Assembly: GCA_964019335.1 (NCBI GenBank)
Contig: OZ025717.1
Span: 428,669-492,668 of the forward strand
DNA length: 64,000 nt
From: Diplonema japonicum
Taxonomy: Eukaryota; Protista; Euglenozoa: Diplonemea
Reading direction: 5' to 3'
Part shown: positions 39,024 through 48,915 of the stretch, one piece after another
Layout: each line of letters opens with the position of its first letter
Numbering within the stretch: the first letter of the stretch is position 1
Translations under genes and position numbers: made by a program
Notes under the pieces: generated by a model
Told to the model about the DNA's origin: nothing
Seen by the model: only the letters and a program-made list of their open reading frames with translations
The model's database searches: none

Positions 39024-41528
39024 ATGCCAACCAGTCTAGAAGAACTCCACAAGCAGTTTCTGCAGTCCGTTTCTGAAAGTACGACTACGAATGATGTGTA
39101 CAGCAAGCTGCTGAACTGTTTCAACAAGAATACTGTAAAGTCCCCTGATTACTTATTGAACCTCGCGGTTTTTTTCGAAATGTGCGGCAAGGGCTCGACT
39201 TCCATCTCAGAATTTCTCGAGAGAGATAAACAATACGGAAAAGCAAAGAACTACGCAGGGGAAACCGCAGTCCACATAGCATGCAGTGAAGGCCACGTTT
39301 CTATTCTAAAAACTCTTATGACCCACGGGTGCTTGGAATCTTCATCCCTCACGATCCCCGACAACGAGGGGTACACACCTTTGAAGAAGGCGGTACTGAA
39401 CGGGCACACCAATATTCTGGGATACCTAAAAGAGGTCAATGTCTGCGAAACTGACCTCAGCAAGTGTGCCGCCATGATTAGTCGGTCGCACAAGGTGTCG
39501 ATCCTTAACTATTACGCGTCCGAAGGGAACACCAATGCCTTGAAGAGGCTCGTTGATGCTCAGTACAAGCTTGACAGGCTCGACACAGATGGCCGCACTG
39601 CCCTCCATGTCGCCGCTGAGACAGGCAACACCTCTACTGTGATCATGTTGCTCTCCAACGACGCGAACCCCAACCTAGTCGACAGATGGGGGAACACGCC
39701 GCTGGACTGCGCGGAGGCAAACCTTCATGTGTCGGTGCAGTCCGTGTTGAGGTCCAAAGGTGGGAAGCATTCGGAAGAACTGTCGTCTGACGAGTTCCCT
39801 TCCGAGCAGACTAATGACACAGTAAGCAGTCCTGTGCAGATGACATCCCGTCTGGGCTTCACCCACGAGAAATTCATTAAGGCAGCTGCCGGGAGAAAGC
39901 TCAGCATCATGAAGTCTGTTTTAAAGGGTTCACCACAGCTGTTGAATGCGACTGACTACGACGGGCGGTCCGCCCTGCACCTGGCGTCTGAGGAAGGGCA
40001 TCTTGACGTGGTTCAGTTCCTGCTCGCAGAGGGGTGCGATGTGAACGTCAAGGACAGGTGGGGGTCCACACCCTTCGTCGGTGCACTGCACAACACACAC
40101 AATGATATCGCGGACTGCCTGCTAGACAACGGTGCTGTCCAGGAGCGCAGCGAACCGGCATCCTGCGCAACATACCTCCGCCACGCAAAGGACTTCTTCG
40201 ACTCCGTTGCAGAGAGTGCAGGCCTTTCCCCAACAGACATCATACCCCTCACCGCTCTCCTGGATTACCTCAAATCCTCATACGGCTTGTACCTCTCCAA
40301 GCACGCCGTTCTGCAGAAAGAAGTAGATGAGCTATCCCTTTCCTACAAGTCACAGGAAGCCCAGAAAATCCTGTTGCATGCGGAGCCCAGTATCCTGTCG
40401 AAGATCCCCGACGGCCGTGTTGTGACGTGGGAGTCCTTCGCAGACTTCACCCTGAAGGACGTCCCGGGGTACAACCCGCAAGGCGAGCGGGAGTTCGAGC
40501 ATGATACCAACACACTGGCGAAGTGTGTCTTGAAAAAACTGAGCATAGGAAAATGGGAGGCGTTTGTCGGAAATCTGCAACAGTTGGTCAACGATGTGCT
40601 GGAGGGCGGCAACGAGGAGGGGGAAACGGCGCAGTACGTCCCGGAGCTGAAGAACGCCGATCCGAACAAGTTTGCAGTGTCCGTGTGTACAGCGGAGGGG
40701 CAGCGGTGCCACTTTGGGGACACAGACACGATGTTCCCTGTGCAATCTGTGGGGAAGACCTTTGCGTATTCCCAGGCATTGTCGACTGTGGGTGTCACAG
40801 AGTTGCACAAACATGTAGGCCAGGAGCCGTCGGGGAGGTCGTTTAACGATTTCGCTCTAACAAAGAACGGTGTCCCTTACAACCCTGTTACGAACAGCGG
40901 TGCCATTGTCACCTGTTCCATGCTGAACCACGCAGAGCCTGACCTCGACAATCGCCTGTTTCCCTACAAACAGCTGCTGTCTGACATGTCAGGCGGGTTG
41001 TCTATCGGGGACTGCATGGATGTCTACCACTCGGAGCAGCAGTGTGCCTTCCGGAATTACGCACTGGCCAACCACATGAAGGCAGAAGGCGTGTTCCCTG
41101 ACTACGTTAACACGCACGACAAGCTCTCTGCTGCGGTAAACTTCTATTTGCGAGTGTGCTCCACGGAGGTCTCGACCCCCATTCTTGCTAACATCGCAGC
41201 AACGTATGCCAACTATGGTGTGTGTCCCTTGAACGGCAAAACCTGTCTCCGTGAGTCTGAGGTCAAGCAGACACTACAGATCCTCTCATCTTGCGGTATG
41301 TATGACTATTCTGGTGAGTGGGCATGCACAATTGGCATGCCTGCAAAGAGCGGCGTTTCTGGTGCAATCTTTGTCGTGATCCCTGGAGTGCTTGGCATGT
41401 CTGTGTTCTCCCCGCGTTTGGATGAGATCGGGAACAGCGTGCGTGGGATCAAGTTCTGCGAAGCGTTTTCCGAAAAGTTCCGGTTCTCCAACCTTGATTT
41501 GTTGTTGAGGCAAGCCGACAATGTTTAG
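39024..41528 (+). CDS. GLS: Glutaminase with N-terminal ankyrin repeats
   Basis: FPVQSVGK (catalytic SxxK), GQEPSGRSFN, CGMYDYSGEW, GMPAKSGVSG, GNSVRG; multiple ankyrin repeats upstream. Confidence 0.93.
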   Translation: MPTSLEELHKQFLQSVSESTTTNDVYSKLLNCFNKNTVKSPDYLLNLAVFFEMCGKGSTSISEFLERDKQYGKAKNYAGETAVHIACSEGHVSILKTLMTHGCLESSSLTIPDNEGYTPLKKAVLNGHTNILGYLKEVNVCETDLSKCAAMISRSHKVSILNYYASEGNTNALKRLVDAQYKLDRLDTDGRTALHVAAETGNTSTVIMLLSNDANPNLVDRWGNTPLDCAEANLHVSVQSVLRSKGGKHSEELSSDEFPSEQTNDTVSSPVQMTSRLGFTHEKFIKAAAGRKLSIMKSVLKGSPQLLNATDYDGRSALHLASEEGHLDVVQFLLAEGCDVNVKDRWGSTPFVGALHNTHNDIADCLLDNGAVQERSEPASCATYLRHAKDFFDSVAESAGLSPTDIIPLTALLDYLKSSYGLYLSKHAVLQKEVDELSLSYKSQEAQKILLHAEPSILSKIPDGRVVTWESFADFTLKDVPGYNPQGEREFEHDTNTLAKCVLKKLSIGKWEAFVGNLQQLVNDVLEGGNEEGETAQYVPELKNADPNKFAVSVCTAEGQRCHFGDTDTMFPVQSVGKTFAYSQALSTVGVTELHKHVGQEPSGRSFNDFALTKNGVPYNPVTNSGAIVTCSMLNHAEPDLDNRLFPYKQLLSDMSGGLSIGDCMDVYHSEQQCAFRNYALANHMKAEGVFPDYVNTHDKLSAAVNFYLRVCSTEVSTPILANIAATYANYGVCPLNGKTCLRESEVKQTLQILSSCGMYDYSGEWACTIGMPAKSGVSGAIFVVIPGVLGMSVFSPRLDEIGNSVRGIKFCEAFSEKFRFSNLDLLLRQADNV

Positions 41529-41681: not shown

Positions 41682-41744
41682 ACTGCTTGGTTTCTCATCA
41701 GAGTTGATTGGTACTTTCCTGAGGCTATCCTCTTTGCGAGAAAA
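41682..41744 (+). ncRNA. Putative single-hairpin AGA-box snoRNA family Z (also 42866-42933, 47206-47271)
   Basis: Three near-identical ~63-nt copies whose conservation ends at ...CTTTGCG-AGA-nnn; flanks diverge. Confidence 0.55.
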
Positions 41745-41766
41745 CAAAAAAATAGTGAAAAGACAG

Positions 41767-41859
41767 ATGATGACAACACTTTTATAATTTGGCAATTTGC
41801 GTGTGAAGTCCCTCAACAGGCCTCCTGATCACATTTATATTCTTAGAAGACGAGACTGA
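41767..41859 (+). ncRNA. 93-nt box C/D snoRNA, copy 1 (others 42354-42446, 45179-45271, 47310-47402, 47877-47969)
   Basis: Box C RTGATGA, internal CTGA, terminal box D CTGA preceded by TTAGAAGACGAG, antisense to the conserved LSU segment CCUCGUC(A/U)UCUAA. Confidence 0.88.
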
Positions 41860-41897
41860 TATCCTTTGTGCAAAAAGGGGAGTTGAGGTAGCAGGGC

Positions 41898-41961
41898 GTC
41901 CAACCGGACCGTGGGGTGCCTCCTAAGTGGCACACACCACTAGGAATTGTTGGGCAGATGA
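41898..41961 (+). ncRNA. Single-hairpin AGA-box H/ACA-like snoRNA family Y (also 42133-42194, 47019-47080, 47441-47504, 47675-47736)
   Basis: Basal stem CCAAC/GTTGG, internal loop GGACC/TAGGA, apical stem with compensatory changes between two variants (GTGG/CCAC vs ATGG/CCAT), then AGA + 3 nt. Confidence 0.8.
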
Positions 41962-42246
41962 GAAAAAGAAGAAGAAGAAGAAGAAGAGAAAGGATGGAAC
42001 AAAGTAAGGACACGACGAGTTACTTTGGCGGGAGAGTGCTGCCTGTGCAGTCCCTCGTCACGCCCTTGTCGCAGAGGTGCTGTTGCTTGCAGGAGAAGTC
42101 CTTGTTGACAGGAAGAAGTAGTTGAGAAGCCACCCAACAGGACCATGGGGTGCTTCCCTGTAGCACACACCATTAGGATTCGTTGGGAAGATTTGATGAT
42201 TCCAACCAGCGATTGTTTTTTTTTTTTTTTTTTTTTTTTTTTTTGA

Positions 42247-42313
42247 GCCACATCATGCCTTAGCCTGACTGAGCCCACTGTGCACTGATCGGTCACCGAT
42301 GATGGCGAGACCT
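42247..42313 (+). ncRNA. Single-hairpin AGA-box H/ACA-like snoRNA family X (also 42767-42833, 46822-46888, 47106-47172, 47770-47836)
   Basis: GCCA/TGGC basal stem, TGACTGA/TCGGTCA inner stem, AGA + 3 nt; five conserved 67-nt copies. Confidence 0.7.
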
Positions 42314-42496
42314 GCTTCCTGGTGTCATCCATTGTTCTTGGAAAGAAAGACGAATGATGACAACACTTTTATAATTTGGCAATTTGCGTGTGAAGTCCCT
42401 CAACAGGCCTCCTGATCACATTTATATTCTTAGAAGACGAGACTGATATCCTTTGTGCAAAAGGGGGAGACAATCATCACAAAATTACAAATCAAA

Positions 42497-42698
42497 CCCT
42501 CGACTGAATCTTTGGATGGGAGGCACCCTTTGTCACCGTGGTGCACAGCTCCCCGCTGATCGGCTCGTAAAGCAAGTCAACAGAGGGGTGGGGGGGGTCA
42601 AACCCCCCTTTCCCTTTGCTGCGGTACATATATTCTATCCCTGCCTCAATGCTTAAAAGGCTCTTACGTGGCATGGGACAACCATGTGTCATACATTT
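42497..42698 (+). ncRNA. U17/snR30-like H/ACA processing snoRNA, copy 1
   Basis: 5' hairpin, box H AAAGCA, internal G/C hairpin, 3' hairpin with m1-like ATATTCTA and m2-like CAACCAT, box ACA + TTT. Confidence 0.85.
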
Positions 42699-43084
42699 TT
42701 AAAAACAATTTTTTTTTCTTCCATTGGTATCAAAAACAACATTGGAAAATGAATAGCATTTCTCGAGCCACATCATGCCTTAGCCTGACTGAGCCCACTG
42801 TGCACTGATCGGTCACCGATGATGGCGAGACCTGCTTTTTTTCCCGTCCCACAAGAAATGAATGGAAAGCACTGCTTGGTTTCTCATCAGAGTTGATTGG
42901 TACTTTCCTGAGGCTATCCTCTTTGCGAGAATAATGCGAAGATAATATACCCGGGACTGTGACAGACCTGAAGGGACTTCGTCAAAAAACAACAACAAAA
43001 ACAACCATTCAAAAAAAAAAAAAAGGATTCACGAAAACAAAGAACAAATAAAAAAAAAAAAAAAAAAAAAAAAGGAGGGAAACC

Positions 43085-44512
43085 ATGTCAGGCTTGTTAC
43101 TGAGTTCACTGGCAGCAGCACTGCTTCTCGCAACGGGGACGGAAGGAGCTGGGAAGAACTACGTGGGCGGGTACCTCCTTGTGCAGGACGTGCAGCAGCT
43201 GAAGGTGCTTGCGAGCAAGGCTGGGAGCCTCCCTGTGAACAGGATGTGGCTGTCGTTCGTGTCGCCGACGATGCTGTACGTGAACGGGTCGCGGACCCTT
43301 GTCGGGACGGGGCTGAACCTGACGGCGGCGGCGGACGGTGGGTTCGCGGAGGTGGAGCAGTACGTGAAGCAGCTGGAGGCGGGCGGGGTGGAGACCTTCC
43401 TGTCGATGGGAGGGTGGAACTACAACTGCTACCCTTACCTGTACATGCGCTACTCGGTCGGAGGCTACGGGACGAGCACCCCGAACTACTGGAAGATCCA
43501 AGAGTTCGGAGGGGGCAGCTTGAGCGGCTGCACGAAGGGGAACCAGTACTGCTACGTGTGCGAGCCTCCCTCGCAGCACACCTCTCTCGACAAGTCCTTC
43601 TCCATCTTCCCTGAGCCCTCGCACTCTGCTTCTTGGAAGGCTGCGAAGGAGTACGTGGAGGCGGGAGCGAACGGGGCGGCGACACCCCAGTGGAACGAGA
43701 ACATGATCCCCGGGCAGCAGTGGACGGACCCGAAGACAGGGATCTCGACCCTGGTTCCGGGGATGACGGCGTACCTGTCGGCAGGGAGGAACCCTTACGA
43801 GGACCTCGTGCACCTGGCGAAGGACCTGGGGTGCGCAGGGGTGGACGTCGACTACGAGGAGATGTGGCACGCCGACACCTTCAAGACGGGGACGGGGCCT
43901 TGGGACCTGCAGCAGACCGTGTACAAGTACGCGGCTATCCTGAAGAACGTGGAGGGGACGATGAGGAAGGTGGCGCCGAAGATGAAGCTGTCGACTGCGG
44001 CGGGAGCTGTGGGGGCGTGGGGAGGGAGCTGGTGGGGAGGGAACCTGAAGGGGTTGTGGTTGAAGGTGAACCAAGCCTACCCTGACCTGGTGAGCTTCAT
44101 GGCGGGAGGCCCCAGCTCTGGAGGGGTGAACGTGATGACCTACGACCTGAGCTCGAACGAGCAGTACCACGAGTGCCCGCAGCCCGGGGTGTGCCAGCTG
44201 GACCAGCAGGTGGCCTTCTACATGAACACCTACAAGGAGGTTCCCATCGCCGCCTCTGTCGGCTACGAGATCGGGACCCCCGCCTACCCGGACCCCAAGC
44301 ACGACCCCACCCACCAGCTTCCCCTCACCACCCAGATGATGGACAGCATCATCTCTCAGACCCAGTCCTCCCACGCGGGAGGGTTCTTCTGGGAGATGTA
44401 CAAGCCTGCTGAGGCGGGACAGGCGACCCCGACCCAGCTTGCCCAAGCCCTCTGCAAGAAGCTCCTCCCGGGGAGCTCCAGGTGCAGTGGTGTCATCCCT
44501 CCTTGGAAGTAG
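43085..44512 (+). CDS. Secreted GH18 chitinase-like glycoside hydrolase
   Basis: Signal peptide; FLSMGGW, GVDVDYEE (DxDxE), NVMTYD, GGFFWE motifs; intronless. Confidence 0.85.
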   Translation: MSGLLLSSLAAALLLATGTEGAGKNYVGGYLLVQDVQQLKVLASKAGSLPVNRMWLSFVSPTMLYVNGSRTLVGTGLNLTAAADGGFAEVEQYVKQLEAGGVETFLSMGGWNYNCYPYLYMRYSVGGYGTSTPNYWKIQEFGGGSLSGCTKGNQYCYVCEPPSQHTSLDKSFSIFPEPSHSASWKAAKEYVEAGANGAATPQWNENMIPGQQWTDPKTGISTLVPGMTAYLSAGRNPYEDLVHLAKDLGCAGVDVDYEEMWHADTFKTGTGPWDLQQTVYKYAAILKNVEGTMRKVAPKMKLSTAAGAVGAWGGSWWGGNLKGLWLKVNQAYPDLVSFMAGGPSSGGVNVMTYDLSSNEQYHECPQPGVCQLDQQVAFYMNTYKEVPIAASVGYEIGTPAYPDPKHDPTHQLPLTTQMMDSIISQTQSSHAGGFFWEMYKPAEAGQATPTQLAQALCKKLLPGSSRCSGVIPPWK

Positions 44513-45178
44513 AGGAGAGAGAGTGTGAATGATGTGGGGGAAGGGGACAAAAAAAAAAAGAGAGAAAACCATCGAGTATTCTTCATTCTTTTTTTTCTTT
44601 CTCCCCCCTCTTTCTTTTCTTTCCTTCTTTCTTCTTTCCCGTTTGGTGGGTGTTTGTATAGTGTGATCTTTTTCTTTATTGCGGTAAAAATGTCTCGTGT
44701 CCACCCAATTTCCCTCCCTTCCCCACTGCTTCATTCCTGCTGCCATCTCTTCCCACACAACGCAAACAGCGTTGGCCGTCCATTTACCTGGCAGTTCATC
44801 AAAAGGGGAGTGTTTTTTTTTTTTTTTTTTTGTCTCCTTTTTGTGTGCTTTATTTCTTTTCTACTTTCAACCCTTTCCCCACTCCCAGTGCTTCCCAAAG
44901 TTCAAGTGGTTAACAATGTTACAATGTCTTTTCTTTTTTATTTATTTACTTGTTCTCTCCCTCTTGGTTACAAGCAAAGAAGGAACTGCAAAACACCAAC
45001 AGCGACACGAGTCACTGTTTCGTTGTTGTTCCTCTTCTTGTTTGCATCCATTCCTTTCGTGAGGCTGTCTTCACGTAACCATCGTATTCCTTTTCTACTT
45101 TTACTTTTTTTGATTTCTTTTATTTTTCTATGCACCCGTTTCCATTGCATTCGGACTGGTCCCCTCCTGGCAAGACAA

Positions 45179-45541
45179 GTGATGACAACACTTTTATAAT
45201 TTGGCAATTTGCGTGTGAAGTCCCTCAACAGGCCTCCTGATCACATTTATTTTCTTAGAAGACGAGACTGATATCCTTTGTGCAAAAGGGGGAGACAACC
45301 ATCACTCATAAAAATTAGAATACAACCCCACATCTCTAACCCTCGACCGAATCTTTGGATGGGAGGCACCCTTTGTCACCGTGGTGCACAGCTCCCCGCT
45401 GATCGGCTCGTAAAGCAAGTCAACAGAGGGGTGGGGGGGGTCAAACCCCCCTTTCCCTTTGCTGCGGTACATATATTCTATCCCTGCCTCGATGCTTAAA
45501 AGGCTCTTACGTGGTATGGGACAACCATGTGTCATACATTT
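45179..45541 (+). ncRNA. Partial snoRNA cluster copy: 93-nt C/D (45179-45271) + U17/snR30-like (45340-45541)
   Basis: Near-identical to 42354-42698 within the RNAs, spacer diverged. Confidence 0.85.
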
Positions 45542-45629
45542 TGTTTCTTCCTTTTCAATTCCAGTATTGCGAATTGAGAATTAACAAAAGCTTTACTGTA
45601 TTCCACTTCACACAGACTTAAAAGTCAAG

Positions 45630-46031
45630 ATGCAAGTTGGAATTGGGTTCAACAGGCTCACGCTGGTCGAGCAGAGGAGGGTGCTTGAAGGGGGTGTTCT
45701 GCAAGGGAACTCAAAGGCAACAGATCGGCTTTATGACAAATACATAGCAAACCTGGGGAGGGGGGGGAAAAGGGAACGGGAGGCACGTGATGCCCCTAAG
45801 CAACCACCTAGGTACCCTTCTCTCCAAGCACGTGAGGTGGAGCCAGAGCCCCTTCCCGAGGCCCCCATTGTCCCTCTGACGCCTGCTGAAAAAGGTTTCC
45901 CTTACACTTTTAACACGCATCAAATGAGGGCTATAAAAACACCTTCAACAGGGCTTGCCCATGGACAAGCCACATGGCCGTTCCCAGTAGATGGACGAGA
46001 CTCCCATCACTCTCTGGCATGGGTGTGGTGA
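45630..46031 (+). CDS. Hypothetical protein
   Basis: 133-aa ORF of normal composition between homopolymer-rich spacers; no recognisable motif. Confidence 0.45.
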   Translation: MQVGIGFNRLTLVEQRRVLEGGVLQGNSKATDRLYDKYIANLGRGGKREREARDAPKQPPRYPSLQAREVEPEPLPEAPIVPLTPAEKGFPYTFNTHQMRAIKTPSTGLAHGQATWPFPVDGRDSHHSLAWVW

Positions 46032-46058
46032 TGGTGAAAATTGTATTTTGTTGTGTAC

Positions 46059-46097
<39 letters not shown>

Positions 46098-46376
46098 CTT
46101 TATGACTATATGTCTTTGTTGTTCGCACGAGCAAAAAAGATTTTTAAAAAGCTGCGAAAGTTTTTTGCTCGGCACAAGTTGCATATAGTTATAAAATCAT
46201 TTTTTGAAAGATAAATATTTGTAACAAAAAAAAAAAAAAAAGAACTTTTCTTTTTTCCCTTTCCATTTTATCAACACACGCAAAGGGAGAGAGAGAGAAA
46301 AAAACACAAAAAGAGGAAAGAAGAAGGGGGAAAAAAAAAGAGAAAAAAAAAAGAAAAAGAGGGAGAACAGATAAAA

Positions 46377-48284
46377 ATGGCGACCAGATCGCACCCGCTG
46401 CAGTTTAAATGGAATTATTGGTTCTTCAAAGGAATGCCCACAGACGAGGAGAAGAAGAGGTACGGTGAGGTCGAGGCCTATAGAAATTGCCACATAAAAA
46501 TCGACCACGAGATTGGCACAGTGCAGGTGTGTTACTTTCCCTCCCCGTTTTTAAACCCTCGACCGAATCTTTGGATGGGAGGCACCCTTTGTCACCGTGG
46601 TGCACAGCTCCCCGCTGATCGGCTCGTAAAGCAAGTCAACAGAGGGGTGGGGGGGGTCAAACCTCCTTTCCCTTTGCTGCGGTACATATATTCTATCCCT
46701 GCCTCGATGCTTAAAAGGCTCTTACGTGGCATGGGACAACCATGTGTCATACATTTTTTAAAATCAAATTTACTGCTTCCATGGTATCAAAGAACCTTGG
46801 AAAATGAATAGCATTTCTCGAGCCACATCATGCCTTAGCCTGACTGAGCCCACTGTGCACTGATCGGTCACCGATGATGGCGAGAGCTGCTTATTTTTCA
46901 TCCATTTTCACAGTTGTTCCAAAGCCCCGTTGTACTGAAGACGAGGTTTGCGAAAAGGAGGACAGAAAGCGTTTGATTGCCATTCTAGTGGATGGCACTT
47001 TTAGCTGAGTCTTTTGCACCCAACAGGACCATGGGGTGCTTCCCTGTAGCACACATCATTAGGATTCGTTGGAAAGATTTAACATTACTCTAGTGGTACT
47101 CTCGAGCCACATCATGCCTTAGCCTGACTGAGCCCACTGTGCACTGATCTGTCACCGATGATGGCGAGACCTGCTTTTTCCCGTCCCACAAGAAGAAGAA
47201 AGGAAAGCACTGCTTGGTTTCTCATCAGAGTTGATTGGTACTTTCCTGAGGCTATCCTCTTTGCGAGAAAAAGAAAAATATGTGCCCTTGTGTTGTGCCG
47301 TAAAGACAAATGATGACAACACTTTTATAATTTGGCAATTTGCGTGTGAAGTCCCTCAACAGGCCTCCTGATCACATTTATTTTCTTAGAAGACGAGACT
47401 GATATCCTTTGTGCAAAAAGGGGAGTTGAGGTAGCAGGGCGTCCAACCGGACCGTGGGGTGCCTCCTAAGTGGCACACACCACTAGGAATTGTTGGGCAG
47501 ATGAGAAGAAGAAGAAGAAGAAGAAGAAGAGAAAGGATGGAACAAAGTAAGGACACGACGAGTTACTTTGGCGGGAGAGTGCTGCCTGTGCAGTCCCTCG
47601 TCACGCCCTTGTCGCAGAGGTGCTGTGCTTGCGGGAGAAGTCCTTGTTGACAGGAAGAAGTAGTTGAGAAGCCACCCAACAGGACCATGGGGTGCTTCCC
47701 TGTAGCACACACCATTAGGATTCGTTGGGAAGATTTGATGATTCCAACCAGTGATTGTTTTTTTTTTGAGCCACATCATGCCTTAGCCTGACTGAGCCCA
47801 CTGTGCACTGATCGGTCACCGATGATGGCGAGACCTGCTTCCTGGTGTCATCCATTGTTCTTGGAAAGAAAGACGAATGATGACAACACTTTTATAATTT
47901 GGCAATTTGCGTGTGAAGTCCCTCAACAGGCCTCCTGATCACATTTATATTCTTAGAAGACGAGACTGATATCCTTTGTGCAAAAGGGGGAGACAATCAT
48001 CACAAAATTACAAATCAAACCCTCGACCGAATCTTTGGATGGGAGGCACCCTTTGTCACCGTGGTGCACAGCTCCCCGCTGATCGGCTCGTAAAGCAAGT
48101 CAACAGAGGGGTGGGGGGGGTCAAACCCCCCTTTCCCTTTGCTGCGGTACATATATTCTATCCCTGCCTCGATGCTTAAAAGGCTCTTACGTGGCATGGG
48201 ACAACCATGTGTCATACATTTAAAGTTTTTGTTTTCAATTCCGACAATTTGGGGAAAATAAGAAAATATAAAAAAAACAAAAAG

Positions 48285-48325
<41 letters not shown>

Positions 48326-48560
48326 AGGATTTCTGGGTGTGCTTCATGGAGTTGCCGAAGCCCAGCGGGATAGCAGCGAGAGAGGAAAATAAACAGGTAT
48401 GGTACATCGTTCTTAGAAAGGACAACACAAAAAATCTCCTTTCCTTGCAGGGGTTTATTCTATGCAGAAGTGGTGTGAGGCCAGAATGGGAAGATGCAGA
48501 GCTCAAACAAGGGGGGGTGTGGACATGGATTGTGGACACACCATCGAAAGTGTATGCATT

Positions 48561-48600
<40 letters not shown>

Positions 48601-48915
48601 TTATTTCTTTCCAGTGACGATTTTTGGAAATATTTGCTGATGGCTGCCATTGGACAACAGTTCACTACCGCTAACCTTGAGGAGGATGAGATCGTTGCCG
48701 TCCAGAACGAGCTCCACAGCAAAAAGACAAGAATCAAAATCTGGCATAAGCGAGCTGAGAAAAAGGATGCTATCAGGGACAGGTACATTTTTTTAAAAAG
48801 TTTTTTTACACTTATTCATCACACTCGCAGGTTAAAAGAATTGTGTGAAAAGAGACTGGACGAGCCGACACTATGGGTTGATAGCGCTTGCTTCCATAAG
48901 AAAATAGAAAAATAG
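46377..48915 (+). CDS. EIF4E: Translation initiation factor eIF4E-family protein (5 exons; snoRNA host gene)
   Basis: Exons 46377-46526, 48328-48396, 48451-48551, 48615-48782, 48831-48915 give HPLQFKWNYW...TVQ|DFW...GVRPEWED...GGVW...WKYLLMAAIG...RIKIW. Confidence 0.9.
46556..48221 (+). ncRNA. Intronic polycistronic snoRNA cluster (2x U17/snR30-like at 46556-46756 and 48020-48221, 2x C/D, 7 AGA-box hairpins)
   Basis: Lies within intron 46527-48327; 47209-48221 duplicates 41682-42698. Confidence 0.85.

Follow-up and report, generated by a model that had tools for sequence, protein, structure and literature searches.

Candidate snoRNA gene arrays in gene spacers and in a cis-spliced intron of the diplonemid Diplonema japonicum

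Small nucleolar RNA (snoRNA) genes form intron-hosted polycistronic clusters in plants, green algae and Drosophila and tandemly repeated clusters in Euglena gracilis, for which we know of none with an intronic location. Here we analyzed a stretch of 64,000 nucleotides (nt) from the diplonemid Diplonema japonicum (Euglenozoa: Diplonemea; assembly GCA_964019335.1, contig OZ025717.1, positions 428,669 to 492,668 of the forward strand; hereafter the window, with positions counted from its first letter), in which short conserved modules recur in three blocks at 41682-48221. We interpret these blocks as probably being amplified arrays of genuine snoRNA genes, in an organism with a spliced leader and same-strand gene arrays, whose RNAs would be released from precursor transcripts. 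In trypanosomatids, mixed genes for box C/D and AGA-box H/ACA-like RNAs are repeated within arrays transcribed by RNA polymerase II, and one Trypanosoma brucei cluster holds snR30 together with SLA1 and two C/D RNAs (PMC2613932, PMC2978370, PMC6411936). For diplonemids, our literature search found no paper on snoRNAs, and neither snoRNAs nor introns are annotated in the genome note of D. japonicum (PMC13598402).

The layout is not a new principle, its general form having precedents in trypanosomes, Euglena, plants and algae. With the trypanosomatid clusters our blocks share mixed and repeated classes, co-orientation with protein genes, an AGA placed 3 nt from the 3' end and a predicted snR30 within the cluster; they differ in that trypanosomatids lack spliceosomal introns almost entirely, whereas here one array sits in one, in that no SLA1-like spliced-leader pocket was found among the hairpins here although the T. 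brucei cluster has SLA1, and in that trypanosomatid snoRNAs show no relation at the Rfam level to the sequences here. The clusters of plants, green algae and Drosophila likewise place several snoRNAs in one long host intron, from which they are presumably released after splicing, whereas the locus described here adds trans-splicing, same-strand gene arrays, intergenic copies of the array and single-hairpin AGA guides. In Euglena gracilis, too, mixed clusters have been amplified and reshuffled and include single-hairpin guides of the AGA type. If our interpretation holds, these modules would be a first candidate set for diplonemids, comprising a two-guide C/D snoRNA, AGA-box hairpins that would extend this euglenozoan feature to diplonemids, and a compact snR30/U17 homologue (the most useful single item) that retains the geometry from m1 and m2 to ACA. 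The locus also shows that arrays can occupy introns in a euglenozoan with both cis- and trans-splicing, which is of use in annotating such genomes and in studying the excision of snoRNAs from long precursors.

Array layout, duplication and the host intron

Modules, boxes, folds, guides, the duplication and the intron with its splicing all come from the analysis itself. Self-BLAST and a module map of the window placed 22 modules in three blocks, namely five copies of B, four of G, three of A, two of C, three of C' and five of F, with A, C, C' and F making up 13 AGA-ending modules. An earlier note on this DNA had given the same counts (5 C/D, 4 ACA-ending and 13 AGA-ending), and we recovered its inventory in full; it had missed two copies of a further conserved module, DE (42006-42096 and 47549-47638, 91 nt), and a decayed C/D fragment, H (46897-47016). 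H is unique in the window and, read directly from the sequence, contains the remains of a B copy in which the guide-like GAAGACGAGG and the tail persist but the D box is gone. All modules lie on the + strand. Block 1 (41682-42931, order A-B-C-DE-C'-F-B-G-F-A) lies between a glutaminase open reading frame (ORF) with its stop at 41528 and an ORF of 475 amino acids (aa) running from an ATG at 43085 to a stop at 44512. Block 2 (45172-45541, order B-G) follows between the 475-aa ORF and an ORF at 45630-46031, and block 3 (46553-48221, order G-F-(H)-C'-F-A-B-C-DE-C'-F-B-G) lies entirely within the first intron of an eIF4E-like gene.

Block 3 sits in a real cis-spliced intron. The eIF4E-like gene, on the + strand, has exon 1 at 46377-46526, an intron 1 of 1801 nt with GT..AG borders (46527-48327), and exons 2 to 5 at 48328-48396, 48451-48551, 48615-48782 and 48831-48915, separated by introns 2, 3 and 4 of 54, 63 and 48 nt. 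This splice model yields an open frame of 189 codons, the downstream part of which matches PF01652 (E 3.2e-14). In transcript contigs of two runs (X2 record 12 and X3 record 21), exon 1 continues directly into exons 2 and 3 at the expected lengths, and for introns 2 and 4 the GT..AG joints are likewise seen in X2; these contigs are 95-99% like the window and come from a related strain or species rather than the sequenced strain. Contigs of a further run, X4, which is DNA of the same strain, run unspliced over the exon borders. The earlier claim that the array is present as both intergenic and intronic copies is thus borne out, with blocks 1 and 2 between ORFs and block 3 in a spliced GT-AG intron. 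A search for a close eIF4E paralogue without the array returned the gene itself only. As a separate observation, an A-run of about 40 nt takes the place of a pyrimidine tract before the 3' splice site of intron 1 (48262-48327), which sets this intron apart from introns 2 to 4, and further long A-runs lie at 43011-43073, just upstream of the 475-aa ORF, and at 46063-46095, just downstream of the ORF at 45630-46031.

The intronic block is in large part a copy of the intergenic one: 41682-42698 aligns to 47209-48221 at 95.45% identity over 1033 columns (self-BLAST), in agreement with the duplication reported before. Within this duplicate the modules are 99.2% identical and the spacers 83%, the spacer differences being mainly indels plus one replaced patch, and six in-module variants separate block 1 from block 3 (41766 G/A, 41839 A/T, 42083 T/deleted, 42091 A/G, 42505 T/C and 42648 A/G). 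Collapse of array copies, which had been raised as a concern, is unlikely because the assembly of strain YPF1604 rests on PacBio HiFi reads at 102-fold plus Hi-C, spanning 62.30 Mb (PMC13598402), and because the X4 contigs agree with the window with zero differences. We conclude that the intronic and intergenic copies arose via segmental duplication with birth-and-death turnover of arrays.

Genome-wide searches, covering 62.5 Mb in 132 contigs, found the same module families in two further arrays on the same contig, one 38 kb upstream of the window (L007) and one about 180 kb upstream (L008), each on the - strand beside - strand genes. Identity to the L008 array is 96% for B, 100% for A and about 97% for G, whereas the spacers reach 44%; for G the figure depends on the method, at 97.5% with BLAST and 90% by global alignment. 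Because module identity reaches 96-100% against 44% for spacers, selection appears to act on the modules and to leave the spacers free, which agrees with the claim made beforehand that conservation is confined to modules while spacers diverge. Genome-wide, G of type 1 is present in about 9 copies and B in about 14, and the arrays L007 and L008 include truncated B copies and F copies with a replaced 5' part. Fragment H, the truncated B copies and the 5'-replaced F copies together indicate that the arrays, spreading through segmental duplication, decay copy by copy.

Two further observations concern array make-up. Directly upstream of the first A, the segment 41606-41681 resembles a diverged F (GATCATGCCTAGAG ... 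CGAGACTGCTT) fused to A via a common CTGCTT, and may be a recombination scar. A contig of another run (X1), from a different relative, joins 45026-45164 to 47303-47494, that is, directly into B then C, where this genome continues after the 45026-45164 region with B then G, so the make-up of the array differs between relatives.

Predicted classes of the modules

Module B (41759-41882, with the RNA at about 41762-41868; other copies at 42346-42469, 45172-45294, 47302-47425 and 47869-47992) has its boxes at 41768 (C, TGATGA), 41803 (D', GTGA), 41826 (C', TGATCA) and 41856 (D, CTGA). Box C reads ATGATGA or GTGATGA (41767/41768) and stands about 88 nt from the D box CTGA in 5/5 copies, and D' and C' are both degenerate, as is common in C/D snoRNAs. 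Two putative guides adjoin these boxes. The 3' guide (41843-41854) forms 12 Watson-Crick base pairs (bp) with positions 2358-2369 of the large-subunit ribosomal RNA (LSU), ending 1 nt before D, in the conserved domain IV run CCUCGUCUUCUAA, and places G2361 opposite the fifth nucleotide. The 5' guide (41791-41802) forms 12 bp (1 G-U; 12-14 bp) with positions 480-491 of the small-subunit ribosomal RNA (SSU), ending at D', within the conserved run GCGCGCAAAUUGCC, for a predicted site at A484, or at C483 with the box read 1 nt further on. Shuffled guides equaled these scores in 4/300 trials for the LSU guide and 6/300 for the SSU guide, and all boxes and both guides are intact in 5/5 window copies. 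B folds worse than its shuffles (z +1.87), as expected with open guides, and its weak Rfam match is to snoZ101 at 41758-41867 (22.4 bits vs a threshold of 44, E 2.1). Because it combines C, D', C' and D boxes with two guides to conserved SSU and LSU, we regard B as a soundly predicted box C/D snoRNA, a methylation guide with putative targets at SSU A484/C483 and LSU G2361.

Two other similarities of B were set aside. The SSU segment paired by its 5' guide is presumably where U14 acts in yeast and human, yet a second, processing-type complementarity was not found in B and we make no claim of a U14 homologue. A 13-nt same-sense identity of the D-box tail to SSU 736-748 is attributable to chance, being matched by 82/200 shuffles.

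Module G (42500-42698, about 199 nt; other copies at 45343-45541, 46559-46756 and 48023-48221) extends from TCGAC to an ACA plus 3 nt, with m1 starting at 42630, m2 at 42679 and ACA at 42693-42695; in the module map the four copies begin at 42494, 45338, 46553 and 48017. In its 3' hairpin, AUAUUCUAU (m1) and CAACCAU (m2) lie on opposite basal strands of a loop and, in the consensus fold, flank a lower stem ACAYAU/AUGUGU; both motifs are invariant in type-1 copies, near-invariant in type-2 paralogues and intact in every window copy. The published snR30/U17 consensus has m1 AUAUUCCUA and m2 AAACCAU (PMC7601244), and a 7-nt spacing from m2 to ACA is reported as invariant (PMC2664660). In G, m2 is followed by GUGUCAU (exactly 7 nt), ACA and the 3 nt at which conservation ends. 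Its m1 pairs with SSU 937-944 over 8 bp (1 G-U), including GGAAU of rm1, and its m2 with SSU 976-980 (UGGUU of rm2) over 5 bp, vs 6 in model species; the distance between the starts of the two sites is 39 nt, vs about 34 in yeast. An invariant AAAGCA, following a possible long 5' hairpin, is a candidate box H (ANANNA), and RNAalifold favours an alternative fold that pairs part of it. Compared with a paralogue family of 75% identity, G keeps its helices, with two compensatory pairs and many wobble-compatible changes. This second snR30/U17-like family, on another contig (C64, loci L009-L012; at least 8 copies of about 175 nt), is without the G-rich extension of the middle hairpin and keeps m1, m2 and ACA.

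On the m1/m2 motifs, the 7-nt spacing to ACA and the pairing to rm1 and rm2 in the organism's own SSU, we identify G as a predicted snR30/U17 homologue, that is, a box H/ACA RNA of 18S processing. The four ACA-ending RNAs of about 200 nt noted earlier thus stand as four copies and not as generic guides. Like snR30/U17 (SNORA73; 203-222 nt in vertebrate U17), G is about 200 nt long, has m1 and m2 beside the loop of the 3' hairpin with 7-nt spacing, and pairs with rm1 and rm2 in expansion segment 6 (ES6) of the SSU. It differs in m1 (AUAUUCUAU vs AUAUUCCUA) and m2 (CAACCAU vs AAACCAU), an extra G-rich middle hairpin, a multi-copy state, the second paralogue family and the lack of an Rfam match. 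Pattern scans of metagenomes for relatives of G gave 0 matches.

Published rules for single-hairpin AGA-box RNAs call for one hairpin of 57-91 nt whose stem I has 5-8 bp; the AGA follows after 1-3 free nt and leaves 3 nt to the 3' end. The pocket measures 5-11 nt on its 5' side, the target U lies 13-16 nt from AGA, and a perfect stem II adjoins the pocket (PMC2613932). Modules C (41898-41961; second copy at 47441-47504) and its paralogue C' (42131-42194; other copies at 47017-47080 and 47673-47736) have a length of 62-64 nt, a stem I CCAAC/GUUGG of 5-7 bp followed by 1-2 nt and AGA, conservation that stops 3 nt past AGA, a 5' pocket of 6 nt, 15 nt from pocket top to AGA and a stem II of 4 perfect bp. 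Both fold stably (z -2.14 for C and -2.87 for C'), and two compensatory changes of stem pairs distinguish them. As folded in silico, C and C' thus agree with every structural rule of the euglenozoan single-hairpin AGA-box guides, and would be guides of the pseudouridylation type. Their pockets fit SSU U746 with 4+6 and 5+5 Watson-Crick pairs and one unpaired nt at stem II, a fit that shuffles match in 25-38/100 trials, and we name this target only tentatively.

The remaining families are conserved modules that we could not assign with confidence to the AGA-hairpin class. Module F (42245-42317, 73 nt, AGA-containing; other copies at 42765-42837, 46820-46892, 47104-47176 and 47768-47840) can form a bulged stem I of 8 bp, a single G, then AGA, plus a stem II of 7 bp; its 3' pocket is just 2-4 nt, its conservation continues 7 nt beyond AGA, and its best target, LSU U2764 (4+8), has a non-canonical geometry. 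Module A (41682-41742, 61 nt, ending in AGA; other copies at 42871-42931 and 47209-47269) has, when AGA is left free, no proper pocket or stem II and no stem adjoining AGA, and carries 16 conserved nt 5' of any stem I. DE has a stem I and AGA, is without the 3' pocket strand and shows about 20 conserved nt after AGA. Neither A nor DE conforms to the structural rules of AGA hairpins. The previous description of 13 AGA-ending hairpins thus held for the count, and as stable hairpins only for C and C' (5/13), A and F falling short. More broadly, the class evidence from B, C/C' and G upholds the proposal of euglenozoan-type snoRNA genes in mixed, amplified clusters.

Other identities were tried and rejected for these modules. 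No fit compatible with the folds made the hairpins an SLA1-like guide of the spliced leader; F contains CUGA and GAUGAUG in D-then-C order, and neither strand nor neighbour gives C...D as a C/D RNA would require; and the minus strand of A has a hammerhead-like CUGAUGAG-GAAAC stretch with helix II missing.

Proposed release from a precursor and rival explanations

The large ORFs of the window from about 7.5 kb to 64 kb lie on the + strand, like all modules, and in all three contig regions (window, L007 and L008) the arrays are co-oriented with neighbouring genes. We counted 257 genomic copies of the 3' end (17 nt) of the diplonemid spliced leader vs 0 for a control. Low-depth contigs in X2, which bears complementary DNA (cDNA), cover A-spacer-B (47226-47433) and G (48001-48224), which suggests precursor RNA. 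We infer that the modules are transcribed together with the gene run and that mature RNAs are freed in each context; the joint transcription is most likely, since every module shares the orientation of the genes around it. RNA polymerase II would transcribe the modules inside the long precursor of the gene run, and the proteins of the small nucleolar ribonucleoprotein (snoRNP) would assemble on them there, protecting the module ends. Blocks 1 and 2 would then be trimmed from intergenic spacer freed by polyadenylation and trans-splicing, and block 3 from the excised 1.8-kb eIF4E-like intron, with exonucleases removing the flanks, whether spacer or intron. On the simplest reading the two locations represent one expression mode and not two, since spacers and introns alike are discarded from a single precursor.

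A further step would be that maturation of diplonemid snoRNAs is blind to context, such that near-identical arrays, with the essential snR30/U17 among their RNAs, are matured equally well from trans-spliced spacers and from a cis-spliced intron; this we advance tentatively, giving it a little less than an even chance. If true, the locus with its six variants would be a natural experiment on splicing type and snoRNP assembly.

Several points weigh against the interpretation of the blocks as snoRNA genes released from a precursor. An Rfam search, proposed beforehand as a check, came out negative, with zero families at gathering score over the whole window, and relaxing to E up to 10 gave weak C/D matches only (snoZ101, 22 bits). 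A, F and DE fold no better than shuffles (z -0.2, -0.23 and +0.66), the 5' strand of the proposed stem I is lost in two divergent F copies, and for C/C', F, A and DE shuffles yield equally good bipartite rRNA targets in 19-40/100 trials, as scored on the organism's own ribosomal DNA. In G, a single-base departure of m2 from the consensus reduces the pairing with rm2 to 5 bp. The RNA record consists of assembled contigs, from which mature ends, strand and copy of origin are not readable, and the runs were taken as RNA by guess. The arrays may also have independent promoters, and the window duplicate is too young to demonstrate constraint on the intronic copies specifically.

This last point bears on the strongest rival, in which some arrays only are productive and the intronic (or intergenic) copy is a silent passenger degraded with its host RNA. 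The recency of the duplicate (95%) means that intact boxes prove little, birth and death are visible in H (46897-47016) and in the truncated B and 5'-replaced F copies of L007 and L008, and the redundancy of type-1 G and of B is high. On the other side, boxes, guides and m1/m2 are intact in every window copy, and known systems need only snoRNP assembly on a transcribed precursor, which the transcribed and spliced intron provides. We consider a silent copy unlikely.

Less probable still is what the earlier note had inferred, that the locus catches an evolutionary switch between intergenic polycistronic and intron-hosted expression modes. The observation behind it stands, the same modules being found at 99.2% identity both between ORFs and in a spliced intron. 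Both contexts, however, are non-coding parts of one same-strand run with which the arrays are co-oriented, in an organism with a spliced leader, so two modes are unnecessary; the intronic copy is a 95% segmental duplicate, and the two further arrays of the same families on the contig adjoin unrelated genes, a pattern more in keeping with a steady state than with a transition. We therefore do not retain the notion of a snapshot of such a change, which we regard as improbable.

It is very improbable that the repeats stem from a non-coding satellite or from the remnant of a mobile element and carry box motifs by chance: no Rfam family above threshold and three module families without an assignable class would fit it, but module borders mark a sharp break in conservation (96-100% vs 44%), guides abut D/D' and match conserved rRNA, C/C' and G show compensatory changes, G has the snR30 motif set with the exact 7-nt spacing, and the repeats contain no ORFs, terminal repeats or target-site duplications.

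Spliced-leader copies and the 475-aa ORF

The 17-nt spliced-leader 3' ends are dispersed over many contigs, and in the four copies inspected (L013-L016) the full leader is about 38 nt long. The sequences downstream of these four are unrelated, though two share one continuation, and upstream lie A-runs in two and T-rich runs in two; the copies may be several kinds of spliced-leader RNA gene or retroposed, leader-capped transcripts.

Just after the 475-aa ORF, sub-threshold microRNA (miRNA) matches at 44500-44650 hit many plant and animal families, and we rejected them as an artefact of a low-complexity purine/pyrimidine mirror. The ORF itself (43085-44512) encodes a secreted-looking protein with no Pfam match, which has a 100% identical copy on the - strand about 180 kb off (L008:2898-4325), beside the paralogous array. 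In the DNA run of the same strain, this ORF stands at roughly 10- to 50-fold the depth of single-copy DNA nearby. The identical distant copy, at a locus whose array spacers are 44% identical to those here, and the raised depth suggest that the ORF belongs to a high-copy, homogenised gene family.

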